This document shows positions 1 to 56,053 of a DNA stretch of 64,000 nt, one piece after another. This DNA comes from Macrostomum lignano (lineage: Eukaryota): positions 434,001 through 498,000 of the forward strand of contig NIVC01000414.1 of assembly GCA_002269645.1 (NCBI GenBank). Reading direction: 5' to 3'. The notes beneath the pieces are model-generated. The model did not search any database, had not been told where the DNA came from, and was given only the letters and a program-made list of their open reading frames with translations. The position numbers and the translations under genes are program-made. Positions within the stretch are counted from its first letter, which is position 1, and each line of letters starts with the position of its first letter.

Positions 1-181
1 GTGAGTTCCTGCCACTGCAATTGAGGCACCCAAGCTGCACATTCAAACATATGAGAGAGTTCCTGCCACTGCAATTGAGGCACCCAAGCTGCACATTCAA
101 ACATGTGAGTGAGTTCCTGCAACTGCAATTGAGGCACCCAAGCTGCACATTCAAACATGTGAGTTCCTGCAGCTGCAATTG
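1..181. repeat. 50-54-bp tandem repeat (GTGAGTTCCTGCAACTGCAATTGAGGCACCCAAGCTGCACATTCAAACAT)
   Basis: About 3.5 copies visible; same repeat at 12745-12922. Confidence 0.9.
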
Positions 182-232
182 AGCCTATAGATTTTAATAT
201 GGTTTCGGTTTTCTCACTTGAACTTTACTTAC

Positions 233-271
233 TCTTTCGTCAGGAAATGGTGATTTCCCTCGCTGTGCCAT
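233..271 (-). CDS. First coding exon of a paralogous ankyrin-repeat gene that continues off the left edge
   Basis: ATG..MAQRGKSPFPDER followed by a GTAAGT phase-0 donor; homologous to exon 12971-13009 (MAWRGKPPFPDEK, GTAAGT). Confidence 0.65.
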
Positions 272-1321
272 GACTGGAAGCTCAGTCGCAGGTGTCTCAG
301 CTCAGCCCAGAGTCCGGCAGGGCAGCGGCCGCCTCTGAAACAGATTTTATTGGCAGATTTGATGGAACGGCAGAACTGCTGCAATATCAGTGCGAGGCTA
401 CTTGAATTAGTAGTGCATTGAGCAGCCCTGAATCTGATTGAGCTCTGATTGCGAGTCAAATGAGACAGGTACTTAGTTGACGGAATTTATGGAATTTTGA
501 AGAAATGTTGCAGAATTTTAGATGACTGCGGGTTTGTAAGGACTTCTCATTTTTGTGGACATGCCTTCTCAGGCTGTCCTCATGTCGTTCTTATGTGTGA
601 AATGTTGAACGCTATTGTCAAATAAGTGAATCAACATTTGTAACCATGGCAATAAATGTAAATTGGTACAGTGTCAGGTATATTTGTATTTAGAAAAGCC
701 ACGACTGTTACAGCACAGAACAGGGCGTACAAAAGAAGCAGCACAATGGCATGCAAAAGCAGCACAGAGACTGGCAAATGCGCGCAGACCAGCATGGAAC
801 ATGAGCTCATTGAAAGTGAAGTTGAAAGTGAAAAGTTTCGCATTAGTGAGGAAAAGTAGCAACGAACTTTTACAAGTTGGAACGCCCCTCGCATTGCTTC
901 TAAAGTGCCCACTGTGCACATTTTGCCCACATTTTGCGACTCCAATGCACACTGTGCACCTTTAATGCACCCAACTCCCCTGTGACACCTGTGCCCCTAC
1001 CGCCTATTTCGTGCCTTAAATTCATTTTTTGACCCTGCGGAGGCACTCAGGTGAACACGCGGTGCGCAAGTGGAACAGAATAGGCATAAGAGAGGCGAAA
1101 GTGGAGCAGAAGGTGCAAAACTCTTCCCCTTTTATGCCTACTTTAGAAATTCTAAATCCAAAGGGAAGCAGACTTTGAGCAAATGCATGCAGCAGGAGAC
1201 AGTCGGAGCAGTGCGAGTTGCGGGTTCGCTCTGGAGCCGAGCAGAACCACGTGAGTTTGAACTGGCACTTATAAAGTACATGATGTGGATTGCAGCCATT
1301 ATGACTAATAGGGGGCACTGA

Positions 1322-1590
1322 CGGCTGAGTGTTGGGTGTCTGAGAGTGGATGTCTGAGTGCTGAGTGACTGAGGCCTGGGTGCGTGAGTGCTGGGTGTCA
1401 TAGGGTGGATGTCAGAGGGCTTGATGTCTGAGTGCTGGGTGTCTGAGGGTGGATGTCTGAGTGCTGGGCGTCTGAGTGCTGGGTGTCTGAGTGCTGTATG
1501 TCTGAGTGCTGAGTGTCTGAGTGCTGGGTGTCTATGAGGCAGTGAGGTGCCTGAGGCAGTGATTCAATGAGGTGCCTGAGACGGTGAGCC
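1322..1590. repeat. GTCTGAGTGCTGG-type minisatellite followed by a short GAGGCAGTGAGGTGCCT array
   Basis: Direct inspection. Confidence 0.85.
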
Positions 1591-1611
1591 GAAGTCACAG
1601 GTAGCAGGAGG

Positions 1612-2235
1612 TCACCGCTCCATCCTCTTTCGGTGCCTGAGCACAGTCTCAGACACGGTGATGGAGTGCAGACGCCCCGAGTCCCAACACTGCAGCTTCC
1701 TGGCGGTGTCCCTGCCGATGCCAAACAACAGCATCTCGGTGTCGTCCAGCATGTTGACAATTGAGCAGTGCTCATTGAGCGGCGAGTGCAGAGCTCGGTC
1801 CATGATGGCGCAGACTCTTCCCCTGAGCAGCTTGCACAGGGTGTGGGCGATGTCAGGCCTTGATGCCCCCGGCAGCAGCAGCAGGTGCATGCCCTGCAGG
1901 TACAGCTGAGGTGACAGCTGGCGCAGGTTCACCACGGTGGGGTCAGCGCTGAAGATGTTCTTCTGCGCCTCCGTCAGGCAGCGCGGGGGCTCCACGCGGA
2001 GCGAGCAGGCCTGCCGAAGGCGCACAAACACGTGCGACACCATGAATAAGGGCAGCTCGATCTTCACTCCGGCCGGCAGGTCTTCGTCCGAGTGACCGCC
2101 GCCCACCTCCAGCCCGGCCAGGCGGGGCAGCGCGTCACCGGTGACGCACTTGAGCCGCTCGCCTGTAGCCAGAATGTCCTCCAGGCTGTAGTAGCAGCCA
2201 AAGTGGTGAAGGTCGCGGAACTGGACTGGGTCCTC
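1612..2235 (-). CDS. GINS3: DNA replication complex GINS subunit Psf3, copy A (single coding exon, no ATG in the exon)
   Basis: Frame open from the acceptor ccccag|GAG at 2235: EDPVQFRDLHHFGCYYSLEDILATGERL..KIELPLFM..FSADPTVVNL..LDDTEMLLF..LQCWDSG..RHRKR, matching recalled Psf3 motifs (SLDDIL, KLELPLW, FSADPNVVDL, FQCWEKG). Confidence 0.9.
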   Translation of the reverse strand, partial: EDPVQFRDLHHFGCYYSLEDILATGERLKCVTGDALPRLAGLEVGGGHSDEDLPAGVKIELPLFMVSHVFVRLRQACSLRVEPPRCLTEAQKNIFSADPTVVNLRQLSPQLYLQGMHLLLLPGASRPDIAHTLCKLLRGRVCAIMDRALHSPLNEHCSIVNMLDDTEMLLFGIGRDTARKLQCWDSGRLHSITVSETVLRHRKRMER

Positions 2236-2294
2236 CTGGGGTGGGGGTGTGGGGGTGTGGGGGTTTGGCGTGATGGCATCTGACTGGATCCATG

Positions 2295-2919
2295 TGTGAT
2301 GTATGCACTTTTATGTTTATGGTTATGTTTATGGTTTACGGACTTAGCGGGAGCTAAAGTACCCAGAAAGCTGCGGGCTGCTTAATATTCATTTTACTAT
2401 TTTTTTCGTTAGGCTTCGAGCCTACGTGTTTGCTTTTACAATAGACTAGCTCGAACAAAATACGACATAAAAACAAAAACAGTGGCGACGATGCCGGTTA
2501 TCGAACCATTCAACTGCAGCAACCCTCGGAACTGGGAGGAGTACGAGGAGCGGTTGGAGCGTTTTCTTGTGGTCAAGAAAGTCACTGATAAAAAGGCCAA
2601 CCTGCTGACCCTGATCGGAGAAGAGGCTGAATGAATTATGAGGAAAGACAATTGTTATGGCTATGGGATAATTGCTATGGGATACTGGTACCCGCAAAAC
2701 CGAGTAGCGGGCCGAACTACAGAATCAGCTGGAAGGACTAGCAGTTGAGCCGGTGGTTAAAGCAAAGGCTTCTACAATTAGCAGGACTCCACAGCAGGAA
2801 CAACCTGTGTCTCGATACAGGTTGAGACAGGATTTTGATAAAGCCTCCCATACGTTTCATTACAGGAAAGGAAGGAGTGTAATGTATGCACTTCTATGTT
2901 TATGGTTTAAACACGGACT
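2295..2919 (+). mobile_element. Miniature internally deleted Gypsy (Mag-like) LTR element, TRIM-like
   Basis: 5' LTR TGT..ACA at 2295-2481, PBS TGGCGACG at 2483, gag start MPVIEPFNCSNPRNWEEYEERLERFL at 2491-2634, PPT AGGAAAGGAAGGAG at 2864-2877, and a truncated 3' LTR start at 2878-2919. Confidence 0.78.
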
Positions 2920-3160
2920 GGATCTGTGATGCTGTCTGACTAGATCTGTGATGGTGTCTGACTAGATCTGTGATGGTGTCTGACTAGATCTGTGATGCTG
3001 TCTGACTAGATCTGTGATGCTGTCTGACTAGATCTGTGATGGTGTCTGACTAGATCTGTGATGGTTTGACTAGATCTGAGATGCTGTCTGACTAGATCTG
3101 TGATGGTTTGACTAGATCTGAGATGCTGTCTGACTAGATCTGTGATGGTGTCTGACTAGA
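2920..3160. repeat. 22-bp minisatellite GACTAGATCTGTGATGGTGTCT
   Basis: About 11 copies; only about 2-3 copies at the paralogous site near 22170. Confidence 0.9.
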
Positions 3161-3721
3161 TTACAGGCTGCCTGTCCATCTGTTAGCTAATATTACAAAT
3201 GAAATTATGCAAATCACGAGTCGATGGCGTTGTTCGCTAGCGTTATAACAGGAACTCATGTATTTGGTTATTAATAAAATCTAAAATAACTAAAGAGGAT
3301 CAATAATCTACTAGACAATTAAAATTAAAACTTAAAGCATATTCATTCCACAATGTAAATAAAAATACGGTTCACTACAATAAACCTGTGACAGAGTTAC
3401 ACTAATGAGACAATACTTATTACATAAGCATGGCGTGCAGCACTAAAATGGCATTTCTGATTGTCTTTGATAATTCAAATCCACCTCAGAGTCATCAAGC
3501 AGTTTATCTCCATCACGGATGCAGGGTCCCAAGCAAATTTGTTCTGACAGGTGAATAACAGCAGAACTGCATGACTGCTAAAAGCTGAACAGCATCGATA
3601 AGCAGATGGAATCCATCAGCCTGAGACACTGAGGCTGAGCTCTGATTGAATAAAATAACACCTGGGTTGAAGGCTTCAGCAGCGACTGAGACAACAGTGG
3701 GAAACAGAAATACATGGATTG

Positions 3722-4372
3722 GGATTTTAGCTGAGTGATTGGGACTTTTAGCTGAGTGAGTGGATTTTTAGCTGAGTGAGTGGATTTTTAGCTGAGTGAG
3801 TGGCATTTTAGCTGAGTGAGTGGATTTTTAGCTGAGTGAGTGGTATTTTTAGCTGCGTGAGTGGCATTTTTAGCTGAGTGAGTGGCAGTTTAGCTGAGCG
3901 AGTGGCATTTTAGCTGAGTAAGTGGCATTTTAGCTGAGTGAGTGGATTTTTAGCTGAGTGAGTGGCATTTTTAGCTGAGTGAGTGGCATTTTAGCTGAGT
4001 GAGTGGTATTTTTAGCTGAGTGAGTGGCATTTTTAGCTGAGTGAGTGGCATTTTAGCTGAGTGAGTGGATTTTTAGCTGAGTGAGTGGTATTTTTAGCTG
4101 AGTGAGTGGATTTTTAGCTGAGTGAGTGGTATTTTTAGCTGAGTGAGTGGATTTTTAGCTGAGTGAGTGGATTTTTAGCTGAGTGAGTGACATTTTCAGC
4201 CTAGCCGAGTGAGATTTTTAGCTGAGTGAGTGACATTTTCAGCCTAGCCGAGTGAGATTTTTAGCTGAGTGAGTGACATTTTCAGCCTAGCCGAGTGTGA
4301 TTTTTAGCTGAGTGAGTGGATTTTTAGCTGAGTGAGTGGCATTTTTAGCTGAGTGAGTGGGAGTTTTAGTTG
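3722..4372. repeat. 20-21-bp minisatellite TTTTTAGCTGAGTGAGTGGA
   Basis: Direct inspection; paralogous array at 22747-23945. Confidence 0.92.
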
Positions 4373-4922
4373 ACTAAGTGGCCAGACCAGTAAAACAAAA
4401 AATAAAAACCAGAACAAAGCAGGCAGCAGCACCAGATCAGGCAGTTTGCATCTGTGTAGATTGGTCGGTTTAAACTCAACTGACAGACATAACTGAAATC
4501 ACTGACCTCATCAATAATGAATTTACTCTGGTGCAGTAAAACAAATTTAAATTGACAGCAGTTTCAACTAACAGACAGCAATAAATAAAAGTACATTTAA
4601 TACCCATCGAAATGAAGACCAACAAAAGCAACATTGGAATAAATTTATTTTGTTTCATTTAAAGCAAAGCTACTCACAGTAGTCAGATGCATTTTATATA
4701 CTGAACTGGGCAGTCACAACAGTCAGTGCATTAATAACAGCAGGGACACTGGAAGGTCACACAGGTATTGTGAGTACTGTGAGTAGCAGTTGCGAGGTGA
4801 TTTTGACAGCCGGAGACAAGCAGTAAACAAAACACAGCAGTGACCAGATGCTCATTCAGTATTGAGTAATTCTAATATAAATTCATATCAATAATTCCAG
4901 TGCGGCTCAGTCAGGGCAGCCG

Positions 4923-5095
4923 CTATTTCAGCTTCACCAGATCGGCAAACGCCAAGTCTGCTCTGCTCTGCAGGGCGGGAGACACCGGCTGGCGGGATTG
5001 CGGGGCTCCCGCTGCCTGCCGCTGCTGCTGCTGGGTGCCCGACCAGTTCACCCTGCCGGGGCTGCCGGGGCTGCGCACCTGCTGAGGGGCGGCTG
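4923..5095 (-). pseudogene. Orphan duplicate of the CLINT1 last coding exon
   Basis: AAPQQVRSPGSPGRVNWSGTQ..DLAFADLVKLK* matches 24495-24673 with a 6-bp deletion; the upstream CLINT1 exons are absent from this copy. Confidence 0.8.
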
Positions 5096-5156
5096 CTGAG
5101 AATGGGAGAGGTTGGGGAATAGGGTGAGAATCAGGCAGTTTCCGCAACAGAGAGAA

Positions 5157-6082
5157 AGCAGACACAGCACAAGAGCCAGTCTGAAAGCAGACACAGCACA
5201 AGAGCCAGTCTGAAAGCAGACACAGCACAAGAGCCAGTCTGAAAGCAGACACAGCACAAGAGCCAGTCTGAAAGCAGACACAGCACAAGAGCCAGTCTGA
5301 AAGCAGACACAGCACAAGAGCCAGTCTGAAAGCAGACACAGCACAAGAGCCAGTCTGAAAGCAGACACAGCACAAGAGCCAGTCTGAAAGCAGACACAGC
5401 ACAAGAGCCAGTCTGAAAGCAGACACAGCACAAGAGCCAGTCTGAAAGCAGACACAGCACAAGAGCCAGTCTGAAAGCAGACACAGCACAAGAGCCAGTC
5501 TGAAAGCAGACACAGCACCAGAGCCAGTCTGAAAGCAGACACAGCACCAGAGCCAGTCTGAAAGCAGACACAGCACAAGAGCCAGTCTGAAAGCAGACAC
5601 AGCACAAGAGCCAGTCTGAAAGCAGACACAGCACAAGAGCCAGTCTGAAAGCAGACACAGCACAAGAGCCAGTCTGAAAGCAGACACAGCACAAGAGCCA
5701 GTCTGAAAGCAGACACAGCACAAGAGCCAGTCTGAAAGCAGACACAGCACAAGAGCCAGTCTGAAAGCAGACACAGCACAAGAGCCAGTCTGAAAGCAGA
5801 CACAGCACAAGAGCCAGTCTGAAAGCAGACACAGCACAAGAGCCAGTCTGAAAGCAGACACAACACAAGAGCCAGTCTGAAAGCAGACACAGCACAAGAG
5901 CCAGTCTGAAAGCAGACACAGCACAAGAGCCAGTCTGAAAGCAGACACAGCACAAGAGCCAGTCTGAAAGCAGACACAGCACAAGAGCCAGTCTGAAAGC
6001 AGACACAACACAAGAGCCAGTCTGAAAGCAGACACAGCACCAGAGCCAGTCTGAAAGCAGACACAGCAAAACAGCCAGTCTG
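5157..6082. repeat. 29-bp minisatellite GTCTGAAAGCAGACACAGCACAAGAGCCA
   Basis: About 31 near-perfect copies; contains the duplication breakpoint. Confidence 0.95.
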
Positions 6083-7274: not shown

Positions 7275-10200
7275 TCAGAAAATTCCCGTCAGGAACTCGT
7301 GCTTCAGCAGCTGCTGTGCTGACTTTCGCTCGCTGTTTTATTGTAAAAATCTGTAATATTAACAAAAAATCACAAAAAATTTTGATGTTAAAATTCAACT
7401 CAACTGTCAGAGCAAACTGCTTGCTGATGTCTCACAGCTCGCAGGCAGCTGAACATTAATATTCAACTGGAAATCTGCAGTCAAATTGCACTGCAAATCT
7501 GTGTGTTCTATAGCTGTGTGCTGTAGCTGTGTGTGCTGTAGCTGTGTGCTGTAGCTGTGTGTGCTGTAGCTGTGTGCTGTAGTTGTGTGTGCTGTAGCTG
7601 TGTGCTGTAGCTGTGTGTGCTGTAGCTGTGTGCTGTAGTTGTGTGTGCTGTAGCTGTGTGCTGTAGCTGTGTGCTGTAGCTGTGTGTGCTGTAGCTGTGT
7701 GCTGTAGCTGTGTGTGCTGTAGCTGTGTGCTGTAGCTGTGTGTGCTGTAGCTGTGTGCTGTAGCTGTGTGTGCTGTAGCTGTGTGCTGTAGCTGTGTGTG
7801 CTGTAGCTGTGTGCTGTAGCTGTGTGTGCTGTAGCTGTGTGTGCTGTAGCTGTGTGTGCTGTAGCTGTGTGTGCTGTAGCTGTGTGCTGTATCTGTGTGT
7901 GCTGTAGTTGTGTGTGCTGTAGCTGTGTGTGCTGTAGCTGTGTGTGCTGTAGCTGTGTGTGCTGTAGCTGTGTGTGCTGTATCTGTGTGTGCTGTAGCTG
8001 TGTGCTGTAGCTGTGTGCTGTAGCTGTGTGTGCTGTAGCTGTGTGCTGTAGCTGTGTGCTGTAGCTGTGTGCTGTAGCTGTGTGTGCTGTAGCTGTATGC
8101 TGTAGCTGTGTGTGCTGTAGCTGTGTGTGCTGTAGCTGTGTGCTGTAGCTGTATGCTGTAGCTGTCTGCTGTAGTCTTTTTAACAGTACAGTAATTATTT
8201 TGTGTGCTGAAGGAACTCACGGCAGTGCCAGAGGCTCGTAGAAGTAAATCTTGCCGTCGTACCTAAATAGGCAGTGGGGAGTCTTAAGTCAGAGGGAATT
8301 CAGTTGAGAGCCACGTAGAATACAAAAAGCTTCAAAAAATTTACCCAAATTTACTCAAACAAGTGTATTGTCTCACAGCTCGCATTAAAATTCAACTGGC
8401 AATCTGCAGTCAAATTGCACTGCAAACTCCCTCAATGCAGCTCAGTCAGTCCCTGCTGCCCATTTAAACTACAAAAATGTAAAAATGCCCACTCAGAGCA
8501 ACTGCAGTCAGCTGCTCAATATTCAATCATAAATTACAGCATAAAGTTTATTAATGATGAATCAAAGTCAGAGAGACATTGTCAGTCGCCATGGAAACTC
8601 ACCCACGCAGCAGCTCAGCCAGTTCGCTCTTTTCCCACTTTGTGGCCAAACGCAGCGCAGTCTTGCTGAATTTGTCCTTCAGGCTCCAAACCGCCCCTGA
8701 GTCCAGCAGAACCCGACCGACTGCGGCGGCGGCGGCGGGGGGCGCACAGATGGCTGCCAGCATGAGGGGCGTGGATTCACAGTCATTCCTGGCATTGGCG
8801 GAGGCTCCGGCAGCCAGCAGAGCGGAGGCTGCGGCAGAATTGCCAGTCTTGGCTGCATGGTGCAGGCAACTGTCAGCCCATCTATCAGCACAGGTGGGGT
8901 CACCCAGCTGCACCAGCTGCTCCCACAGAGCCTCATCATCGCACGAGCTGTTCCGAGCTGCCAACATCAACGCGCTGCGACCAAATCCGTCAGGCAGGTC
9001 GCAGTTCCAGCGGGTCGCCGCTTGCCGCAGCCCCGCCGAGTCGCCCGCCTCGGCCAGCCGCTGCAGTTCCTGTCGATCCGCCTCCTCCTGCAAAGGCAAG
9101 CGGGAAATTTGAGCACAGCTGCTCAGCTGCAGCCGCATCGGCAGCGCAGATGCCGCTCACCTGATCTGTCAGGCCGGAGATCTTGCCATCTGCATCCACA
9201 ACCAGCCGCATCTCCCTGCAACAGCAAAAATGAGCAGCGAATTTGCAATTTTCTCAAATCCGACAACTACGATCGCGAAAACAATTTTTTAGTTGTACAA
9301 TAGAATTTTCATGATAAATTTAGAATTTAGTAAACAGAAATTCTTAATTCTCTGAGCTGCTCGCAGATGGAGTTTCCAAGAGGACTGCAGCAGCTCTGCA
9401 ACAATCAGCATTGGCGAGAGCGCATCCGACTTCTCACACGCAGCTCATTTTCCATTTCTGCAGCATGAGTTTCCTTCCATCTCACAATGTCTCACAAAGC
9501 ACTCATGTACAGCCTCCCAGTTCTCCATCTGCAGCTCAACCCACACACTCTCACTGCACACCGAGGCCCTACAGCTTCCATTCTCGACTGAGATCAACCG
9601 GCACCCCATTGGCTGGTAGGCAGTCAGCCAATCACAGCTCTCGCCCATCAAGCAGTCAGACAGAGACAAGCTCAGCTGACTGGCTCTGATTGGCTGGCCT
9701 GAGACTGCAGCTCTGGCCACCAAAGCCAGCCGAATGCTGCAAAACTTGATGGACACAGCAGCGAACTGCTCACTCACCGCTCGATGTAGCTGGCCAGCTC
9801 TGAGTGGCCGCTGAGCCTCGCCAGGTCCGACGCCGTCCGACCCTCGCGATCCTGCAGTCCGAGCAGCCGCGATCTCTTCGAGTTTCCGTGCTCAGAGCAC
9901 TCATTGAACCTTATCTGCCTGAGCAGGTGCAGCAGGTGCTTGGCGCATTTCCAGCTTCCAGTCCACGCCGCCTCCATCAGCGGAGTGGCGCCGTTGTCGT
10001 TCAGCAGCCACTTCGCATCGAACGACAGCAGCGTCAGCAGCCGCAGGTGGTCCCGCCGGGCTGCCAGGTGCGCAGCCGTGTCGCCGTTCGCGTCAGCCGC
10101 CTTGGGGTCCGCGCCCAGCTCAAATAAGTACAAGATGCACTTTTCAGTGTGCACGGGAGTCTCAGGAGCGTCGGCCACCTGCATGAGGACGGTCCGAAGA

Positions 10201-13009
10201 GCTGCATCAGCACTGGTGACCAGCTGGCGCGTTGCCAGCCGCCGCACCCGGCCAAAGTCACCTCGGATGACGTCGTGGACAAGAGTCTGGAGACTAACCG
10301 ATTCGTTTAGAAAGTAGCTGTAGCTGTTTGTGCTGTAGCTGTGTGCTGTATCTGTGTGCTGTAGCTGTGTGCTGTAGCTGTGTGTGCTGTAGCTGTGTGC
10401 TGTAGCTGTGTGTGCTGTAGCTGTGTGCTGTATCTGTGTGCTGTATCTGTGTGTGCTGTAGCTGTGTGCTGTAGCTGTGTGTGCTGTAGCTGTTTGCTGT
10501 ATCTGTGTGCTGTAGCTGTGTGTGCTGTAGCTGTGTGTGCTGTAGCTGTGTGCTGTATCTGTGTGCTGTAGCTGTGTGTGCTGTAGCTGTGTGTGCTGTT
10601 GCTGTGTGCTGTAGCTGTGTGCTGTAGCTGTGTTTAAATTACTTATGAAATAAAATTTTGAAATACTTTCTATTTTATTGTAAAAATCTGTAATATTAAC
10701 AGAAAATAACAAAGAAAGTTCAGATGTTAAAGTTAAACTTAACTGTCACAGCAAAATGCTTGCTGGTGTCTCACAGCTCGCAGGCAGCTGAACATTAATA
10801 TTCAACTGGCAATCTGCAGTCAAACTGCACTGCAAACTCCCTCAATGCAGCTCAGTCAGTCCCTGCTGCCTATTTAAACTACAAAAATGTAAAAATGCCC
10901 ACTCAGAGCAACTGCAGTCAGCTGCTCAATATTAAATCATAAATTACAGCATAAAGTTTATTAATGATGAATCAAAGTCAGAGAGACATTGTCAGTCGCC
11001 ATGGAAACTCACCCACGCAGCAGCTCAGCCAGTTCGCTCTTTTCCTTCTGTGTGGCGAAATCCAGCGCAGTCCTGCCGATTATGTTCTTCAGGCTCCAAT
11101 CCGCCCCTGAGTCCAGCAGAACCCGACCGACTGCGGCGGCGGTGGCGGGGGGCGCAAAGGCTGCATGCATGAGGGGCGTGAATTCAGACAGACCCCTGGC
11201 ATTGGCGGAGGCTCCGGCAGCCAGCAGAGCGGAGGCTGCGGCAGAATTGCCAGCTCGGGCTGCCCAGTGCAGGCAACTGTGAGCATTTACATCCGCACAG
11301 GTGGGGTCACCCAGCTGCACCAGCTGCACCCACAGAGCCTCTTCACCGCACGAGCTGTTCCAAGCTGCCCACATCAACGCGGTGCGACCAAATCTGTTAG
11401 GCAGGTCGCAGCTGCCGCGGGTCGCCGCTCGCCGCAGCCCCGCCGAGTCGCCCGCCTCGGCCAGCCGCTGCAGCTCCTGTCGATCCGTCTCCTCCTGCAA
11501 AGGCGAGCGGTAAATTTGAGCACAGCTGCTCAGCTGCAGCCGCATCGGCACCGCAGATGCCGCTCACCTGGGCTGTCAGGCCGGAGATCTCGCCATCTGC
11601 ACCCACAACCAGCCGCATCTCCCTGCAACAGCAAAAATGAGCAGCGAATTTGCAATTTTCTCAAATCCGACAACTACGATCGCGAAAACAATTTTTTTGT
11701 TGTACAATAGAATTTTCATGATAGATTTAGAATTTAGTAAACAGAAATTCTTAATTCTCTGAGCTGCTCGCAGATGGAGTTTCCAAAAGGACTGCAGCAG
11801 CTCTGCAACAATCAGCATTGGCAAGAGCGCATCCGACTTCTCACACGCAGCTCATTTTCCATTTCTGCAGCATAAGTGTCCTTCCATCTCACAATGTCTC
11901 ACAAAGCACTCACACACAGCCTCCCAGTTCTCCATCTGCAGCTCAACCCACACACTCTCACTGCACACCGAGTCCCTACAGCTTCCATTTTCGACTGAGA
12001 TCAACTGGCACCCCATTGGCTGGGAGGCAGCCAGCCAATCACAGCTCTCGCACATCAAGCAGTCAGACAGAGACAAGCTCAGCTGACTGGCTCTGATTGG
12101 CTGGCCTGAGACTGCAGCTCTGGCCACCCCAGCCGAATGCTGCAAAACTTGATGGACACAGCAGCGAACTGCTCACTCACCGCTCGATGTAGCTGGCCAG
12201 CTCTGAGTGGCCGCTGAGCCTCGCCAGGTCCGACGCTGTCCGACCCTCGAGATCTTTCTTTTTGAGCAGCCGCGACCTCTTCGAGTTTCCTTGCCCAAAG
12301 CACCTATTGAGCCCGTACTGCCAGAGCAGGTGCAGCAGGTGCTTGGCGCATTTCCAGCTTCCAGTCCGCGCCGCCTCCATCAGCGGAGTGGCGCCGTTGT
12401 CGTTCCGCAGCCACTTCGCATCGAACGACAGCAGCGTCAGCAGCCGCAGGTGGTCCCGCCGGGCTGCCAGGTGCGCAGCCGTGTCGCCGTTCGCGTCAGC
12501 CGCCTTGGGGTTCGCGCCCAGCTCAAATAAGTACAAGATGCACTTTTCAGTGTGCACGGGAGTCTCAGGAGCGTCGGCCGCCAGCATGAGGACGGTCCGA
12601 CGAGCTGCATCAGCACTGGTGACCAGCTGGCGCGTTGCCAGCCGTTGCACCTGGCCGAAGTCACCTCGGATGACGTCGTGGGCGAGAGTCTGGAGATCGG
12701 CTGGTGAGTCTCCGACGCTTGCCCGGTTGGTGGGGTACGGCTGAGTGAGTTTCTGCAACTGCAATTGAGGCACCCAAGCTGCACATTCAAACATGTGAGT
12801 GAGTTCCTGCAACTGCAATTGAGGCACCCAAGCTGCACATTCAAACATGTGAGTGAGTTCCTGTAACTGCAATTGAGGCACCCAAGCTGCACATTCAAAC
12901 ATGTGAGTTCCTGCAACTGCAATCAAGCCAACAGATATTATTATGCTTTCAGTTCTTTACTCGAACTTACTTTCTCGTCAGGAAATGGTGGTTTGCCTCG
13001 CCAAGCCAT
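7275..13009 (-). CDS. Multi-exon ankyrin-repeat protein (about 746 aa, roughly 16 ANK repeats) with a tandemly duplicated three-exon cassette
   Basis: Model: 12971-13009, 12181-12689, 11568-11622, 11013-11494, 9778-10293, 9161-9215, 8603-9087, 8221-8262, 7275-7332. All introns are GT-AG with compatible phases (0,2,0,2,2,0,2,2) and the total of 2241 nt is divisible by 3. ANK motifs include GDTAAHLAA, GATPLMEAA, GRTALMWAA and STPLMLAA. Confidence 0.72.
7500..8172. repeat. 13/15-bp minisatellite GCTGTGTG(TG)CTGTA
   Basis: Direct inspection; intronic in the ankyrin gene. Confidence 0.92.
8603..9087 (-). CDS. Ankyrin exon A1 (4 ANK repeats)
   Basis: Acceptor cctttgcag|GAG and donor GG|GTGAGT; DGFGRSALMLAA, DSCLHHAAKTG, ESTPLMLAA, SKTALRLA. 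Confidence 0.85.
9778..10293 (-). CDS. Ankyrin exon B1
   Basis: DANGDTAAHLAARRDH, NDNGATPLMEAAWTG, DREGRTASDLA; donor CG|GTGAGT. Confidence 0.85.
10316..10633. repeat. 13/15-bp minisatellite GCTGTGTG(TG)CTGTA, second array
   Basis: Same unit as 7500-8172. Confidence 0.92.
11013..11494 (-). CDS. Ankyrin exon A2 (4 ANK repeats)
   Basis: Paralog of A1 with the same splice sites; NRFGRTALMWAA, HSCLHWAARAG, EFTPLMHAA, GRTALDFA. Confidence 0.85.
12181..12689 (-). CDS. Ankyrin exon B2
   Basis: Paralog of B1; phase-0 acceptor ctccag|ACT matches the exon-1 donor. Confidence 0.85.
12745..12922. repeat. 50-54-bp tandem repeat in ankyrin intron 1
   Basis: Same as 1-181. Confidence 0.9.
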
Positions 13010-13575
13010 GACTGCAAGCTCAGTCCGTCAGTCGCAGGTGTCTCAGCTCAGCCCGAGAGTCCGGCAGGGCAGCGGCCGCCTCTGCAGCAGATTTTATTGG
13101 CCCTGGAGCAGCTGCAGCGAATTCCTTCTCACCGTGCCTGCTCAGATTGCGGCTGCTTTTGCTGGCTTTGCTTGCTGGACTCCAATTGGCTCTGAGAGAA
13201 CAGCAGAACTGCATCAATACCAGTGCGTGGCTACTTGAATTAGTAGTGCATTGAGCAGCCGCGATTCCAATTAGGGAGTCAAATTAAACAAGTACTTAGT
13301 GGACGGTATTGATACATTGGAGAAATTTTGCATAATTTTAGAGGTTATAAACTGCAGGTGGCTATTGGAAGCATTTCGGTTGGTAATGCATTCGGTTTGA
13401 AGCATTTCAAATTCTTGTGTGAAAGCTCGAACGCTGCTATTAAAGAAAGAAGTGAATGAACACATATGCAACCATGGCGATAAATGTAAATTGGTGCATT
13501 GTCGGGTATATTTATGTTTATAAAAGCCACTGACTGTTACAGAAAAGAACAGCAACCGCACAGGGCGTAAAAAAG

Positions 13576-13731
13576 GAGCAGCACAATGGCATGCAAAAGC
13601 AGCACAATGGCATGCAAAAGCAGCACAATGGCATGCAAAAGCAGCACAATGGCATGCAAAAGCAGCACAATGGCATGCAAAAGCAGCACAATGGCATGCA
13701 AAAGCAGCACAATGGTATGCAAAAGCAGCAC
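13576..13731. repeat. 21-bp tandem repeat GCAGCACAATGGCATGCAAAA
   Basis: About 7 copies, versus about 1.5 copies at the paralogous site near 740. Confidence 0.9.
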
Positions 13732-14001
13732 CGACCGGCAAATGCGCGCAGACCAGCATGCAACAGGACTTCATTGAGCCAAGCAGACTTTGAGCAAATG
13801 CAGGCAGCAGGAGAGTCAGAGCAGTGCGAGTTGGGAGTTCGCTCTGAAGCCGAGCAGAACCACGTGACTTTAGATTTGCAATTATAAAGTACATGATGCA
13901 TATTGCAGCAATAGTGATTGGATGCAAAGGGGTAAAAAATTTTGACTAATGGGAGCCACTGATGGCTGAGTGCTTGGGTAAGGCAATCAGTTACCTCACT
14001 G

Positions 14002-14763
14002 CCTCACTGCCTCATTAAGGTGCCTGAGGCAATGAGGTGCCTGAGGCAGTGAGGCAGTGAGATGACTGGGGCAGTGAGGTGCCTGAGGCACTGGGGCAGT
14101 GAGGTGCCTGGGGCAGTGAGGTGCCTGAGGCACTGGGGCAGTGAGGTGCCTGGGGCAGTGAGGTGCCTGAGGCACTGGGGCAGTGAGGTGCCTGGGGCAG
14201 TGAGGTGCCTGAGGCACTGGGGCAGTGAGGTGACTGGGGCAGTGAGGTGCCTGAGGCACTGGGGCAGTGAGGTGCCTGGGGCAGTGAGGTGCCTGAGGCA
14301 GTGAGGTGCCTGAGGCCGTGAGGCAGTGAGGTGCCTGGGGCAGTGAGATGACTGGGGCAGTGAGGTGACTGGGGCAGTGAGGTGACTGGGGCAGTGAGGT
14401 GCCTGAGGCAGTGAGGTGAGTGGGGCAGTGAGGTGCCTGAGGCAGTGAGGTGACTGAGGCAGTGAGGTGCCTGAGGCCGTGAGGCAGTGAGGTGCCTGAG
14501 GCAGTGAGGCAGTGAGGTGCCTGAGGCAGTGAGATGCCTGAGGCAGTGAGGTGCCTGAGGCAGTGAGGTGCCTGAGGCAGTGAGGCAGTGAGGTGCCTGA
14601 GGCAGTGAGATGCCTGAGGCAGTGAGGTGCCTGAGGCAGTGAGGTGCCTGAGGCAGTGAGATGCCTGAGGCAGTGAGGTGTCTGAGGCAGTGAGGTGCCT
14701 GAGGCAGTGAGGCAGTGAGGTGTCTGAGGCAGTGAGGTGCCTGAGGCAGTGAGGTTCCTGAGG
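14002..14763. repeat. GAGGCAGTGAGGTGCCT (17-bp, with 8-bp subunits) satellite, left of the LINE
   Basis: Direct inspection. Confidence 0.92.
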
Positions 14764-20348
<5,585 letters not shown>

Positions 20349-20985
20349 GAGGTTCCTGAGGCAGTGAGGCAGTGAGGTGTCTGAGGCAGTGAGGTGCCTG
20401 AGGCAGTGAGGTGCCTGAGGCAGTGAGGTGTCTGAGGCAGTGAGGTGCCTAAGGCAGTGAGGCGTCTGAGGCAGTGAGGTGCCTGAGGCAGTGAGGTGGC
20501 TGAGGCAGTGAGGTGGCTGAGGCAGTGAGGTGCCTGAGGCAGTGAGTTGCCTGAGGCAGTGAGGTGCCTGAGGCAGTGAGGTGCCTGAGGCAGTGAGGTG
20601 TCTGAGGCAGTGAGGTGCCTAAGTTAGTGAGGTGGCTGAGGCAGTGAGGTGGCTGAGGCAGTGAGGCAGTGAGGTGTCTGAGGCAGTGAGGTGCCCGAGG
20701 CAGTGAGGCAGTGAGTTGCCTGAGGCAGTGAGGTGCCTGAGGCAGTGAGGTGGCTGAGGCAGTGAGGTGGCTGAGGCAGTGAGGCAGTGAGGTGTCTGAG
20801 GCAGTGAGGTGCCTGAGGCAGTGAGGTGACTGAGGCAGTGAGGCAGTGAGGTGCCTGAGGCAGTGAGGTGACTGAGGCAGTGAGGCAGTGAGGTGCCTGA
20901 GGCAGTGAGGTGCCTGAGGCAGTGAGGCAGTGAGGTGCCTGAGGCAGTGAGGTGCCTGAGGCAGTGAGGTGTCTGAGGCAGTGAG
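20349..20985. repeat. GAGGCAGTGAGGTGCCT satellite, right of the LINE
   Basis: Continuation of the array at 14002-14763. Confidence 0.92.
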
Positions 20986-21008
20986 CCGAAGTCACTGGCA
21001 GCAGAAGG

Positions 21009-21632
21009 TCACCGCTCCATCCTCTTTCGGTGCCTGAGCACAGTCTTAGACACGGTGATGGAGTGCAGACGCCCTGAGTCCCAACACTGCAGCTTCCTGG
21101 CGGTGTCCCTGCCGATGCCAAACAACAGCATCTCGGTGTCGTCCAGCATGTTGACAATTGAGCAGTGCTCATTGAGCGGCGAGTGCAGAGCTCGGTCCAT
21201 GATGGCGCAGACTCTTCCCCTGAGCAGCTTGCACAGGGTGTGGGCGATGTCAGGCCTTGATGCCCCCGGCAGCAGCAGCAGGTGCATGCCTTGCAGGTAG
21301 AGCTGAGGCGACAGCTGGCGCAGGTTCACCACGGTGGGGTCAGCGCTGAAGATGTTCTTCTGCGCCTCCGTCAGGCAGTGCGGGGGCTCCACGCGGAGCG
21401 AGCAGGCCTGCCGAAGGCGCACAAACACGTGAGACACCATGAATAAGGGCAGCTCGATCTTCACTCCGGCCGGCAGGTCTTCGTCCGAGTGACCGCCGCC
21501 CACCTCCAGCCCGGCCAGGCGGGGCAGCGCGTCACCGGTGACGCACTTGAGCCGCTCGCCTGTGGCCAGAATGTCCTCCAGGCTGTAGTAGCAGCCAAAG
21601 TGGTGAAGGTCGCGGAACTGGACTGGGTCCTC
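21009..21632 (-). CDS. GINS3: GINS subunit Psf3, copy B (no ATG in the exon)
   Basis: 624-nt open exon from ccccag|GAG; differs from copy A at R/H and E/K in the translated ORFs. Confidence 0.9.
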   Translation of the reverse strand, partial: EDPVQFRDLHHFGCYYSLEDILATGERLKCVTGDALPRLAGLEVGGGHSDEDLPAGVKIELPLFMVSHVFVRLRQACSLRVEPPHCLTEAQKNIFSADPTVVNLRQLSPQLYLQGMHLLLLPGASRPDIAHTLCKLLRGRVCAIMDRALHSPLNEHCSIVNMLDDTEMLLFGIGRDTARKLQCWDSGRLHSITVSKTVLRHRKRMER

Positions 21633-21704
21633 CTGGGGTGGGGGTGTTGGGTTTGGAGTGATGGTGTCTGACTAGATCTGTGATGGTATTTGACTGGATG
21701 TGTG

Positions 21705-22168
21705 TGTGATGTATGCACTTTTATGTTTATGGTCTAAACACGGACTTAGCGGGAGCTAAAGTACCCAGAAAGCTGCGGGCTGCTTAATATTCATTTTACT
21801 ATTTTTGTTCGTTAGGCTTCGAGCCTACGTGTTTGTTTTTACAATAGACTAGCTCCGACAAAATACGACATAAAAACAAAAACAGTGGCGACGATGCCGG
21901 TTATCGAACCATTCAACTGCAGCAACCCTCGGAACTGGGAGGAGTACGAGGAGCGGTTGGAGCGTTTTCTTGTGGTCAAGAAAGTCACTGATAAAAAGGC
22001 CAACCTGCTGACCCTGATCGGAGAAGAGGCTGAATGAATTATGAGGAAAGACAATTCCTATGGCTATGGGATAATTGCTATGGGATACTGGTACCCGCAA
22101 AACCGAGTAGCGGGCCGAACTACAGAATCAGCTGGAAGGACTAGCAGTTGAGCCGGTGGTTAAAGCAA
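21705..22168 (+). mobile_element. Paralogous copy of the mini Gypsy element, with 3' part further deleted
   Basis: LTR 21705-21884, PBS at 21886, gag ATG at 21894; PPT and 3' LTR are absent. Confidence 0.75.
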
Positions 22169-22746
22169 AAGTGTCTGACTAGATCTGTGATGGTGTCTGA
22201 CTAGATCTGTGATGGTGTCTGACTAGATTAGAGACTGCCTGTCCATCTATTAGCTAATACTACAAATGAAATTATGCAAATCCCAAGAGTAGATAGCGTT
22301 GTTCGCTAGCGTTATAACAGATGCCATCCGACTCCAGGAACTCATGTATTTGGTTATAAATAAAATCTAAAATAACTAAAGAGGATCAATAATCTACTAG
22401 ACAAATAAAATTAAAATTTAAAGTATATTCATTCCACAATATAAATAAAAATACGGTTTATTACAACACACCTGTAACAGAGTTACACTAATGAGACAAT
22501 ACTTATCCACCTCAGAGTCATCAAGCAGTTCATCTCCATCACAGATGCAGGGTCCCAAGCAAAGTTGTTCTGACAGGTGAATAAAAGCAGAACTGCATGA
22601 CTGCTAAAAGCTGAACAGCATTGATAAGCAGATGGAATCCATCAGCCTGAGACACTGAGGCTGAGCTCTGATTGAATAAAATAACACCTGGGTTGAAGGC
22701 TTCAGCAGCGACTGAGACGACAGTGGGAAACAGAAATACATAGATG

Positions 22747-23945
22747 GGGATTTTAGCTGAGTGATTGGGACTTTTAGCTGAGTGAGTGGAATTTTTAGCT
22801 GAGTGAGTGGATTTTTAGCTGAGTGAGTGACATTTTAGATGAGTGAATTGGCAGTTTAGCTGAGTGAGTGGGATTTTTTGCTGAGTGAGTGGCATTTTTA
22901 GCTGAGTGAGTGGCAGTTTAGCTGAGTGCGTGGGATTTTTAGCTGAGTGAGTGGCATTTTTAGCTGAGTGAGTGGATTTTTAGCCTACCCGAGTGAGTGA
23001 GATTTTTAGCTGAGTGAGTGGATTTAGCTGAGTGAGTGGCATTTTTAGCCTACCCGAGTGAGTGAGATTTTTTTAGCTGAGTTTGTGGATTTTTAGCTGA
23101 GTGAGTGGGATTTTTAGCTGAGTGAGTGGATTTTTAGCTGAGTGAGTGACATTTTAGATGAGTGATTGGCAGTTTAGCTGAGTGAGTGGGATTTTTTGCT
23201 GAGTGAGTGGCATTTTTAGCTGAGTGAGTGGCAGTTTAGCTGAGTGCGTGGGATTTTTAGCTGAGTGAGTGGCATTTTTAGCTGAGTGAGTGGATTTTTA
23301 GCCTACCCGAGTGAGTGAGATTTTTTTAGCTGAGTTTGTGGATTTTTAGCTGAGTGAGTGGGATTTTTAGCTGAGTGAGTGGCAGTTTAGCTGAGTGAGT
23401 AGCATTTTTAGCCTAGCCGAGTGAGTGGCATTTTTAGCCTAGCCTAGTGAGTGAGATTTTTAGCTGGGAGAGTGGATTCAGCTGAGTGAGTGGCATTTTT
23501 AGCCTAGCTGAGTGAGTGGCATTTTTAGCCTAGCTGAGTGAGTGGCATTTTAGCTGAGTTTGTGGATTTTTAGCTGAGTGAGTGGCATTTTTAGCTGAGT
23601 GAGTGGCATTTTTAGCTGAGTGAGTGGCATTTTTAGCTGAGTGAGTGGATTTTTAGCTGAGTGGGTGGATTTTTAGCTGAGTGAGTGGCATTTTTAGCTG
23701 AGTGAGTGGATTTTTAGCTAAGTGAGTGACATTTTCAGCCTAGCCGAGTGAGATATTTAGCTGAGTGAGTGGCATTTTTAGCTGAGTGAGTGGATTTTTA
23801 GCTGAGTGGGTGGATTTTTAGCTGAGTGAGTGGCATTTTTAGCTGAGTTTGTGGATTTTTAGCTGAGTGAGTGGATTTTTAGCTGAGTGAGTGGCATTTT
23901 TAGCTGAGTTTGTGGATTTTTAGCTGAGTGAGTGGGAGTTTTAGC
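22747..23945. repeat. 20-21-bp minisatellite TTTTTAGCTGAGTGAGTGG
   Basis: Paralog of 3722-4372, about twice as long. Confidence 0.92.
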
Positions 23946-24494
23946 TGACTAAGTGGCCAGACCAGTAAAACAAAAAATAAAAACCAGAACAAAGCAGGCA
24001 GCACCAGATCAGGCAGTTTGCATCTGTGCAGATTGGTCGGTTTAAACTCAACTGACAGACATAACTGAAATCACTGACCTCATCAATAATGAATTTACTC
24101 TGGTGCAGTAAAACAAATTTAAATTGACAGCAGTTTCAACTAACAGACAGCAATAAATAAAAGTACATTTAATACCCATCGAAATGAAGACCAACAAAAG
24201 CAGCATTGGAATAAATTTATTTGGTTTCATTTAAAGCAAAGCTACTCACAGTAGTCAGATGCACTTTATATACTGAACTGGGCAGCCACAACAGTCAGCG
24301 CATTAATAACAGCAGGGACACTGGAAGGTCACACAGGTATTGTGAGTACTGTGAGTAGCAGTTGCGAGGTGATTTTGACAGCCGGAGACAAGCAGTAAAC
24401 AAAACACAGCAGTGACCAGATGCTCATTCAGTATTGAGTAATTCTAATGTAAATTCATATCAATAATTCCAGTGCGGCTCAGTCAGGGCAGCCG

Positions 24495-27195
24495 CTATTT
24501 CAGCTTCACCAGATCGGCAAACGCCAAGTCTGCTCTGCTCTGCAGGGCGGGAGACACCGGCTGGCGGGATTGCGGGGCTCCCGCTGCCTGCCGCTGCTGC
24601 TGCTGGGTGCCCGACCAGTTCACCCTGCCGGGGCTGCCGGGGCCGGAGCTGAGCACCTGCTGAGGGGCGGCTGCTGAGTATGGGGAGTTTATGGAGTGGG
24701 GTGAGAGTCAGGCTGTTCCAGAAGAGAGTCAGACAGCACAAGAGCCAGTCTGAAAGCAGACACCGCACAAGAGCCAGTCTGAAAGCAGACACAGCACAAG
24801 AGCCAGTCTGAAAGCAGACACAACACAAGAGCCAGTCTGAAAGCAGACACAGCACAAGAGCCAGTCTGAAAGCAGACACAGCACAAGAGCCAGTCTGAAA
24901 GCAGACACAGCACAAGAGCCAGTCTGAAAGCAGACACAGCACAAGAGCCAGTCTGAAAGCAGACACAGCACAAGAGCCAGTCTGAAAGCAGACACAGCGC
25001 AAGAGCCAGTCTGAAAGCAGACACAGCACAAGAGCCAGTCTGAAAGCAGACACAGCACAAGAGCCAGTCTGAAAGCAGACACAGCACAAGAGCCAGTCTG
25101 AAAGCAGACACAGCACAAGAGCCAGTCTGAAAGCAGACACAGCACCAGAGCCAGTCTGAAAGCAGACACAGCACAAGAGCCAGTCTGAAAGCAGACACAG
25201 CACAAGAGCCAGTCTGAAAGCAGACACAGCACAAGAGCCAGTCTGAAAGCAGACACAGCACAAGAGCCAGTCTGAAAGCAGACACAGCACAAGAGCCAGT
25301 CTGAAAGCAGACACAGCACCAGAGCCAGTCTGAAAGCAGACACAGCACAAGAGCCAGTCTGAAAGCAGACACAGCACAAGAGCCAGTCTGAAAGCAGACA
25401 CAGCACAAGAGCCAGTCTGAAAGCAGACACAGCACAAGAGCCAGTCTGAAAGCAGACACAGCACAAGAGCCAGTCTGAAAGCAGACACAGCACAAGAGCC
25501 AGTCTGAAAGCAGACACAGCACCAGAGCCAGTCTGAAAGCAGACACAACACAAGAGCCAGTCTGAAAGCAGACACAGCACAAGAGCCATTCTGAAAGCAG
25601 ACACAGCACAAGAGCCAGTCTGAAAGCAGACACAGCACAAGAGCCAGTCTGAAAGCAGACACAGCACAAGAGCCAGTCTGAAAGCAGACACAGCACCAGA
25701 GCCAGTCTGAAAGCAGACACAGCACCAGAGCCAGTCTGAAAGCAGACACAGCACCAGAGCCAGTCTGAAAGCAGACACAGCACCAGAGCCAGTCTGAAAG
25801 CAGACACAGCACAAGAGCCAGTCTGAAAGCAGACACAGCACAAGAGCCAGTCTGAAAGCAGACACAGCACAAGAGCCAGTCTGAAAGCAGACACAGCACA
25901 AGAGCCAGTCTGAAAGCAGACACAGCACAAGAGCCAGTCTGAAAGCAGACACAGCACAAGAGCCAGTCTGAAAGCAGACACAGCACAAGAGCCAGTCTGA
26001 AAGCAGACACAGCACAAGAGCCAGTCTGAAAGCAGACACAGCACAAGAGCCAGTCTGAAAGCAGACACAGCACAAGAGCCAGTCTGAAAGCAGACACAGC
26101 ACAAGAGCGGCTCACCAACAGGCCGCATCGGAGGAGGCTGCAGAGGTTCCGCCTTCATCGGAGTCATTCCCAGCCAGCCAGCCTGACCGTGAGAGCCGCT
26201 AAAGTCCAGATCTGTGAGCAAGTCCAAGTCTCTGCCAGCGGCTGCTGAAGCCACCGGGGCCGATAGAGGCTGCGTCCTGACGGCAGCAAATAAATCAGCG
26301 TCTCCCGGCATGAGACCGGCTCTGGAATTGGGGGTTGGCATTCAGTCACAGCATTCACACTCACAGCAGTCACACTCACAGCAGTCACACTCACAGAATT
26401 CACACTCACAGCATTCACACTCACAGCAGTCACACTCACAGCACCCATCACCCACCCATCGCTCACCCATCACAGCCGGCAGCAGCTGCAGTGCCGCTCG
26501 AGGCCGACTGCCCGAGCTCCAGCAGGTCGTCAGCACCAGCAGCAGGTGCAGCAGCCCAGAGCAGGTGCTGCTGATGCCGCTGTCCGCCCCCATCCAACTC
26601 GGTGACTGCAGCTGCCGACTGAAAGTCAGCGAACTCATCCTCATCATCCTGAGCTGAGTCAGCGGCGGCGGCGGCGGCCGTCTCACCGCCCGTCAGGTCG
26701 ATGACCCGCCGACCGGCTGCTGAAGGCTTGGGCGGCTGCTGCGCCCTCCGCTCGCTCCAACCGTTGTTGCTATGGAAACCGTCTGTGAATTCCTCGTCTC
26801 TTGCGTAAGTTGACACCGTGTTCCACTCCTCCTCTCTGCGGTGTGGGATTGAGCGGCTGGGTTTGAAATGCTGACTGGCATCTTCTGTGAGACAGAATTT
26901 ATTGATTATTATTCAATCTGACTGCAGTTAAAATCATCACTCTGAACCATAAAGATTTTAAAATCATGTTGCAGAGGCCACTGATTATCAAATGCGCAGG
27001 TGAAAGTAAATAAAATTTATAAGTGAGAATTTGCTCATAATGGTTGGTTAATTAATTGCGTCCTGCTTAGCATTATGGGGCCAAGGCCTGAATACAGCAC
27101 TCATGTTAGAAGCCTAATTGCTGAACCATAAATTATTTCACTCGATTTAAATATTGTGGCGCATTAGATATCCGATACAGTGGCTGGCTAAGTTG

Positions 27196-49576: not shown

Positions 49577-52518
<2,942 letters not shown>

Positions 52519-54076: not shown

Positions 54077-56053
<1,977 letters not shown>

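Follow-up and report, generated by a model that had tools for sequence, protein, structure and literature searches.

How can two neighbouring gene copies keep nearly identical introns and scaffold residues and still encode proteins that differ at so many residues of a single exon? This question is raised by a 64-kb stretch of the Macrostomum lignano genome (GCA_002269645.1, contig NIVC01000414.1, positions 434,001 to 498,000), hereafter the window, which carries ankyrin genes on its minus strand; all coordinates given below are positions within this window. The comparison of the window with itself revealed a tandem duplication (8383-10293 against 10793-12696, 94.1% identity over 1913 aligned nt) with a repeat unit of about 1.9 kb, in which an exon B is followed by a short exon S and by an exon A. 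We refer to the two units as copy 1 or W1 (exons B1, S1 and A1) and copy 2 or W2 (exons B2, S2 and A2). We interpret them as two tandem ankyrin modules of a multigene family of M. lignano, shaped by diversifying selection and by sequence exchange between paralogs, and we give this reading a probability of about 65%. GT-AG borders are present at all exon junctions of both units, with exon B measuring 516 nt in its duplicated part, exon S 55 nt and exon A 485 nt (A1) or 482 nt (A2). The three exons form an in-frame module of 352 codons, which is matched in Pfam by Ank_2 (E = 5e-28), Ank_4 (4e-20) and Ank (2e-16), all above the curated cut-offs.

The intron segment next to exon A differs between the two copies at 3 of 212 nt (8391-8602 against 10801-11012), exactly the figure given by an earlier reading made from the letters of this stretch (the sequence-only reading), and the estimate of about 36 amino acid differences in exon A was also correct, with 36 changes in 161 aligned residues. 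The run of identical nucleotides that had been noticed within this exon is 59 nt in our alignment, being the longest one there, and encodes GNSAAASALLAAGASANAR. Mismatches between W1 and W2 amount to 51 of 482 positions in exon A (10.6%), 32 of 516 in exon B and 4 of 55 in exon S, against 22 of 851 in the three introns (2.6%). The excess over the introns is significant for exon A (Fisher test, p = 2e-9) and also for exon B (p = 1.4e-3). The Nei-Gojobori estimates of nonsynonymous (dN) and synonymous (dS) divergence in exon A are 0.142 and 0.052, a ratio (omega) of 2.7, and ten codons carry two or three nucleotide differences between A1 and A2. In exon B, 21 residues are changed and omega is 1.4, which agrees with the weaker version of the pattern that had been described for this exon.

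Where do these changes fall? The ankyrin register was set by the conserved G4 and T6, and the positions typical of designed ankyrin repeat proteins (DARPins), namely 2, 3, 5, 13, 14 and 33, were fixed before counting. The 24 DARPin-type positions of exon A hold 17 of the 36 changes, while 5.4 would be expected (hypergeometric p = 3e-8), so the clustering at groove positions claimed by the sequence-only reading is real. With positions 1 and 10 included, the resulting set of 32 positions accounts for 24 of the 36 changes (p = 3e-13). In the AlphaFold2 model, built with the family alignment (predicted local distance difference test, pLDDT, 94; predicted template modelling score, pTM, 0.92), the module is predicted to consist of two stacked ankyrin sub-domains, with a hairpin (exon S) and a long helix connecting them, and the repeat helices are paired at the expected ankyrin spacing. 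Positions 2, 3 and 5 of this model are in the loop preceding each inner helix, and positions 10, 13 and 14 occupy one helix face. In the PDB, sequence and fold are matched best by DARPins (as DARPin fusions), the ankyrin repeat clusters (ARCs) of tankyrase and ankyrins (ankyrin-1). The DARPin libraries of Binz and colleagues, from 2003, are said to randomise positions 2, 3, 5, 13, 14 and 33. The ANK-N5C library randomises 2, 3, 5, 10, 13 and 33 in beta-turn 1 and helix 1, which creates a continuous binding surface (PMC4308713). The M. lignano family varies at 1, 2, 3, 5, 10, 13 and 14 and so overlaps with the randomised positions of both; DARPins and ANK-N5C, however, are synthetic consensus scaffolds, and the likeness concerns the positions that tolerate or use diversity, not ancestry.

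Is this pattern restricted to the pair in the window? A protein search recovered about 54 relatives, all of them from M. lignano, the best one with 86% identity; the protein identity of the module to the relatives P0001 to P0018 ranges from 75 to 88%. Beyond these relatives, only generic ankyrin matches with at most 45% identity over short stretches were found. Six loci of GCA_002269645.1 contain the same exon-intron unit with 84-96% DNA identity, none of them identical to the window, and a 56%-identical relative is present on a short contig of run SRR23592405. An exact-sequence look-up of the A1 and A2 reading frames in public assemblies gave no match, and our literature search for a description of this family found none. 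Exon A is open in all nine genomic copies, with indels of whole codons only. Among the seven copies with comparable introns, dN in exon A exceeds both dS and the intron divergence (by 1.7- to 5.8-fold) in 21 of 21 pairs; pairs with the copies L3 and L6 were excluded from the intron comparison, as their intron 3 is non-homologous and produces spurious distances of 0.33-0.49. Entropy calculated over 53 proteins peaks at positions 2, 3, 5, 10, 13 and 14 of each exon A repeat, with further peaks in the exon B loop (IRFNECSEH) and in exon S. The residues lining the concave face, that is, positions 1, 2, 3, 5, 10, 13 and 14 in the four exon A repeats plus the exon B loop, are therefore hypervariable across the family, while scaffold residues and introns are nearly identical among copies. 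The proposal of a rapidly diversifying family is borne out by these paralogs, with variability on the ankyrin binding surface in every exon A repeat.

Codon models of the Goldman-Yang type were fitted with our own likelihood program to the nine exon A DNA copies. The single-ratio model (M0) gave an omega of 1.59, and the comparison of the selection model M2a with M1a gave a likelihood ratio statistic (LRT) of 217 (p = 7e-48), with an omega of 14.5 for 11% of the sites. The posterior exceeds 0.95 at 13 sites, and every one of them falls on repeat position 1, 2, 3, 10, 13 or 14, 11 being DARPin-type and 2 being positions 1 or 10. For exon B the LRT is 78, with 4.5% of the sites under selection, located in the loop and the following hairpin. 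As a null control, eight sets simulated under M1a reached an LRT of at most 2.1; scaffold codons alone gave 9.1. A partition model was also fitted, in which a separate synonymous rate is allowed for the 30 groove codons. This rate is 3.5 times that of the scaffold (p = 3e-4), and the groove omega is 2.5 (p = 8e-4 against 1), so that it exceeds 1 even then. The four-fold third positions differ in 31% of the cases at groove codons against 6% in the scaffold, and synonymous sites of groove codons are 3.5-5 times more diverged than those of the scaffold. A simpler Nei-Gojobori count by site class (groove proportion of synonymous differences, pS, 0.33) was abandoned in favor of the partition model and the four-fold count, because it is in part a pathway artefact of codons with multiple hits. 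The sequence-only reading had named an omega at or below 1 in the groove and an even spread of substitutions as results that would speak against it, and neither was observed. The evolutionary signal is strong and robust to the controls.

Selection is accompanied by exchange. The pairwise homoplasy index (PHI) test is significant in exon A (p = 0.0025-0.007) and over the whole unit (p = 0.0005), and the nearest relative of W1, as well as that of W2, shifts along the unit. The 33-nt exon B loop of W1 is identical to that of L3 (33/33) and matches W2 at 22 of 33 nt. In repeats 2 and 4, the helix patches agree with those of L1b, L1a or L4 at 19-22 of 21-24 nt (repeat 2: W1 and L1b 20/21, W2 and L1a 19/21; repeat 4: W2 and L4 22/24), and the KKKDLEG patch of W2 is also found in protein P0012. 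The significant PHI test in exon A, the mosaic of nearest neighbours and the 33-nt patch common to W1 and another locus support the patchwise gene conversion that had been suspected. The groove identity between W1 and W2 is 26%, which is the family median, and their scaffolds are 91% identical, which places them among the top 4% of family pairs. Across the genomic copies, scaffold dN is correlated with the divergence of the introns (r = 0.77) and groove divergence is not (pN, r = 0.04). Since synonymous divergence is raised in the groove and groove divergence does not track that of the introns, some of the groove variation probably predates the duplication, or came in from other paralogs, instead of being made since then by point mutation. 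It had been stated that old paralogs whose introns alone were recently homogenised would contradict the sequence-only reading; this was seen in part, as there are signs of homogenisation, but it extends over the scaffold and is not limited to the introns. An exon A tree grouping W1 with L1b and W2 with L1a, which hints at a tandem pair older than a duplication of the locus, was not used, having internal branches of about 0.02 and L001 flanks that are not collinear with the window.

Some points weigh against selection and exchange as the whole explanation. The codon models assume an approximate star-like tree, report naive posteriors and include nine DNA copies from a family of more than 50, and recombination inflates the likelihood ratios of site models. 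The groove omega is about 14 in the site model and 7.7 in a partition model where the synonymous rate is shared, but drops to 2.5 with its own rate, meaning that some of the signal stems from additional mutation or conversion and not from selection. The scaffold omega in the partition model is 0.99, and substitutions found in W1 alone affect residues that are conserved elsewhere (R110W and D323V), so some relaxation is possible. The window copies have no kinase and copy 2 has no terminal exon, which could make them decaying derivatives. The invariant scaffold between patches makes it impossible to delimit the donor tracts.

The history we propose would begin with new copies arising by tandem and segmental duplication, with junctions at minisatellites. 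Frequent exchange between paralogs, by gene conversion or unequal recombination, would homogenise introns and scaffold, and the same exchange would move short variant 'cassettes', shuffling older groove variants between copies. Diversifying selection would then favor copies with differing grooves, so that groove differences could persist and accumulate.

Could the pair be simply very recent, differing by new point substitutions under strong selection on the groove, with no exchange among paralogs? In intron 3 and the 3' half of intron 1, W1 and W2 are in fact more similar to each other (97-99%) than to any other copy, omega is above 1, and a few states occur in a single copy (for example F330/I330 and H300). 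However, this scenario needs 39 substitutions in about 90 nt, with 24 of 31 groove codons changed, when about 2 would be expected from the intron rate. It also has to account for the ten exon A codons with two or three nucleotide differences, for the contrast in four-fold third positions (31% against 6%), for a groove divergence that has already reached the family median independently of the introns, and for a significant PHI test with identical patches at other loci, which makes it improbable. Very improbable, in our judgment, is that the window copies are decaying, kinase-less partial duplicates whose differences reflect relaxed constraint. A kinase reduced to a 46-nt remnant, the 5' truncation of B1, the lack of a terminal exon in copy 2, the scaffold omega near 1 and the W1 substitutions at conserved positions would all be expected from decay, but neutral dN should then be close to dS and to the intron divergence (0.024) and it is 0.14. 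Moreover, neutral changes would be evenly spread, while those observed sit at set positions; the frames of exons A and B are all open, with one codon as the sole exon indel; the entire spliced frame of 751 codons is open; and the same pattern is found in copies that do bear a kinase. A mutational process aimed at groove codons, such as clustered multi-nucleotide mutation or templated hypermutation with no selection for diversity, would explain why synonymous change is raised there too and why so many codons have multiple hits. We regard it as extremely improbable, since the groove omega remains significantly above 1 with a separate synonymous rate and the affected codons are defined by protein structure (i, i+3 and i+4 of the helix face, plus the hairpin), with no DNA motif seen. 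We know of no targeted hypermutation of this kind in animal germlines.

What could such a groove be used for? Kinase or caspase domains are annotated in 15 of the about 54 relatives. In L001 (twice), L002 and L006, exon A is followed on its own strand by kinase exons after about 0.8-1.3 kb; in L005 caspase exons follow the module, the distance to kinase or caspase being overall about 0.8-1.5 kb. The ankyrin module is followed by a caspase domain in the proteins P0010, P0028 and P0040, and the domain of P0040 has a QACRG motif and resembles caspase-3/8/22. The family kinase is closest to the STE-group MAP3K5 and PAK, keeps the HRD, DFG and APE motifs and has an omega of 0.4-0.9, unlike exon A of the same genes. 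In the window, tblastn at E<1e-3 found no kinase or caspase exons, and a relaxed search for both retrieved only the 46-nt kinase remnant at 7286-7330. A regular-expression search of the window for the C-terminal exon and kinase motifs returned nothing, the local motif being YFYE and not YFDE; the terminal exon was located through homology to other loci. The window copies appear to have lost the kinase. NACHT and NB-ARC domains are absent from the Pfam scan of the window module and from the precomputed Pfam lists of the 54 relatives. The N-terminus has no obvious signal peptide, and some relatives read by eye start with MGxxxS, which suggests an intracellular, possibly membrane-anchored product. 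The groove would bind ligands, and the family would then be a germline-encoded repertoire of intracellular binding specificities, with the MAP3K-like kinase or caspase joined to the module in related loci presumably acting as effector. Relatives with kinase or caspase domains fit a sensor-plus-effector design, and a role in innate immunity or allorecognition is plausible on the analogy of this domain architecture.

Other functions have to be considered: the products might be variable adaptors for the substrates of endogenous signalling, or belong to a selfish element of the toxin-antidote or drive type. Nothing in our analysis ties the family to pathogens, tandem arrays amid transposons and minisatellites are what a fast-turnover region looks like, and intracellular hypervariable families also arise through intragenomic genetic conflict. 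On the other hand, a variable binding domain followed by a MAP3K-like kinase or a caspase resembles the layout expected of a stress- or death-signalling sensor, and we consider a function outside defence somewhat unlikely.

Clusters of NLR and resistance (R) genes in plants also form tandem arrays with paralog exchange, with omega above 1 confined to the solvent-exposed binding surface of the LRR, and venom genes show accelerated evolution, with introns better conserved than exons. The M. lignano family is like both in its general dynamics, but fold, domain architecture and organisms differ. TNNI3K, ILK, RIPK4/ANKK1 and DAPK have ankyrin repeats and a kinase in one polypeptide, as the M. lignano relatives do, but these are conserved single-copy genes, and the kinases of TNNI3K, ILK and RIPK4 belong to the TKL group, whereas the kinase of the M. 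lignano family is nearest to the STE-group MAP3K5 and PAK. The closest known analogue in evolutionary behaviour is the ankyrin domain of fungal NOD-like receptors, in which positively selected sites are found on inner helices and hairpins and the repeats evolve in concert (PMC4986451). The ANK, TPR and WD40 domains of these receptors share with our family the exchange of sequence between paralogs or repeats and the association of a repeat domain with varied effectors (Dyrka et al. 2014, PMC4986451). Unlike them, the M. lignano family has no NACHT or NB-ARC domain, places its effectors at the C-terminus and belongs to an animal. Furthermore, its variation lies between paralogous genes with four fixed, non-identical repeats, whereas the fungal receptors have near-identical internal repeats with copy-number polymorphism. 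Platyhelminth caspases whose pro-domain contains ankyrin repeats have been described as typical of parasitic flatworms, along with a caspase of M. lignano whose pro-domain resembles a kinase, with no expansion or hypervariability reported in that study (PMC11463336). The layout of ankyrin plus caspase is found in P0028 and P0040, while the window genes have no caspase. By similarity search alone, the best 120 matches of the caspase domain are M. lignano caspases and caspase-3/8/22-like proteins, with no ankyrin caspase of parasitic flatworms (Schistosoma) among them.

The features of the locus are listed below. The eight exons from 13009 to 8217 can be read as an open frame of 751 codons that ends in the terminal exon of the family. 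W1 and W2 would make an ankyrin-only product, either one two-module protein of 751 residues or two shorter ones from tandem genes. Copy 2 may alternatively end with LLRG and a stop, through a TGA within its own donor site, in which case copy 1 would need trans-splicing or an internal start. The putative first exon is homologous to the exon encoding ...FTDEK or ...IPYDK in the relatives P0002 and P0004, and the stretch of 54-nt repeats is translated as WVPQLQLQ in partial database models. The two parts ('a' and 'b') of the intron, the terminal exon and the minisatellite are in a different order after A1 than after A2, and both arrangements are unlike those of canonical loci. Exon B is truncated next to simple repeats, at differing points, in L4 and L6a too, which suggests repeat-associated partial duplications.

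Features of the ankyrin locus and minisatellite arrays in the 64-kb window
Feature	Position	Strand	Remarks
Putative first coding exon of the upstream copy	12971..13009	-	ATG at 13009, MAWRGKPPFPDEK, then GT donor; in frame with exon B2
54-nt repeat (3.4 copies) in the intron preceding exon B2	12742..12923	-	ttgcagttgcag acceptor-like motif in each copy; Tandem Repeats Finder
Exon B2	12181..12758	-	5' end complete; N-terminal ankyrin sub-domain, mostly conserved; duplicated part from 12696
Exon S2	11568..11622	-	55 nt; beta-hairpin linker between ankyrin sub-domains
Exon A2	11013..11494	-	482 nt; four ankyrin repeats with hypervariable groove
Intron after A2	10654..11012	-	No terminal exon downstream; 10793-11012 is 98% identical to 8383-8602
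Minisatellite at the duplication junction	10317..10633	.	13/15-nt GCTGTAGCTGTGTGT-type units; abuts truncated exon B1
Exon B1	9778..10293	-	Lacks the first ~20 family codons; weak ttag acceptor in frame with the A2 donor
Exon S1	9161..9215	-	55 nt
Exon A1	8603..9087	-	485 nt; four ankyrin repeats with hypervariable groove
Intron after A1	8263..8602	-	8383-8602 is the near-identical segment
Terminal coding exon	8217..8262	-	(G)YDGKIYFYEPLALP then stop; homologous to the exon of relatives that ends in ...GYDGKNYFDEPQAMP and a stop
Minisatellite 3' of the terminal exon	7499..8174	.	GCTGTAGCTGTGTGT-type units; same arrangement at L003
Remnant of the 3' end of a kinase exon	7286..7330	-	46 nt; 93% nucleotide identity to L001
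Minisatellite arrays	3717-4382, 5154-6082, 22748-23957, 24733-26108, 27440-27915, 28677-29663, 37482-38548, 39920-41027, 51883-52141		

The related loci present some peculiarities of their own. Further partial duplications are found in L003 (12150-12900), L004 (around 9968) and L006 (5373-5548 and 9685-9860), and the two copies of L006 share an identical exon A sequence. In the protein P0006 the last ankyrin repeats are duplicated internally, and the annotated C-terminal tail of P0004 is the kinase exon read out of frame.

The remainder of the window is rich in repeats. A segmental duplication (1-6082 against 12745-26108, 88-95% identical) has its second copy interrupted by a non-LTR retrotransposon (15338-20334, plus strand) with endonuclease, reverse transcriptase and RNase H frames, probably degraded since these are split over several open reading frames. 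This element sits inside a minisatellite array, whose flanking parts (14018-14763 and 20349-20985) are 82-87% alike. As the sequence directly upstream of exon B2 is matched by positions 1-354, another ankyrin gene is probably present immediately to the left of the window, and the locus is probably a tandem array with units of at least 12.7 kb. Long minisatellite arrays are unusually dense, with units of about 8-29 nt and some of them 98-100% identical between copies; the one beginning at 39920 is also present in the related locus L001. On the plus strand, a frame with Tc1/mariner-type transposase helix-turn-helix domains was found at 30471-31451. An uninterrupted frame of 425 codons with a PDZ and three LIM domains, in a GC-rich island (42741-44018, plus strand), could represent either a PDZ-LIM gene devoid of introns or a retrocopy. 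Three tandem paralogous frames (49577-50185, 54077-54775 and 57727-58392, plus strand), with 76-86% DNA similarity, have the pore motif of two-pore-type potassium channels (Ion_trans_2). Close to the right end there is an inverted repeat of 186 nt (62484-62669 against 62992-63177, 96.8% identity), with the arms about 320 nt apart.

The pair in the window indicates that exchange plus selection can remove every sign of a recent common origin from about 30 codons, in the midst of 1.9 kb that remain 97-99% identical, and it is an unusually clean natural case in which evolution varies those ankyrin positions that are also randomised in protein engineering. Little is known about immunity and self-recognition in flatworms, and the loss of key components of the extrinsic cell-death machinery has been reported for platyhelminths (PMC11463336). 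The M. lignano family, which is large, seen in this species alone and combines a hypervariable ankyrin face with kinases or caspases as putative effectors, is a concrete and testable candidate for a recognition system in a tractable model with transgenesis and RNA interference. A bolder proposal, which we put forward as rather doubtful, is that Macrostomum has dozens of intracellular 'natural DARPins', with grooves diversified by cassette exchange and wired to a MAP3K-like kinase or a caspase, and with kinase-less copies such as those of the window serving as decoys or regulators. If true, they would represent a receptor class for innate immunity (or self/non-self recognition) in animals that dispenses with NOD, LRR and Ig domains.

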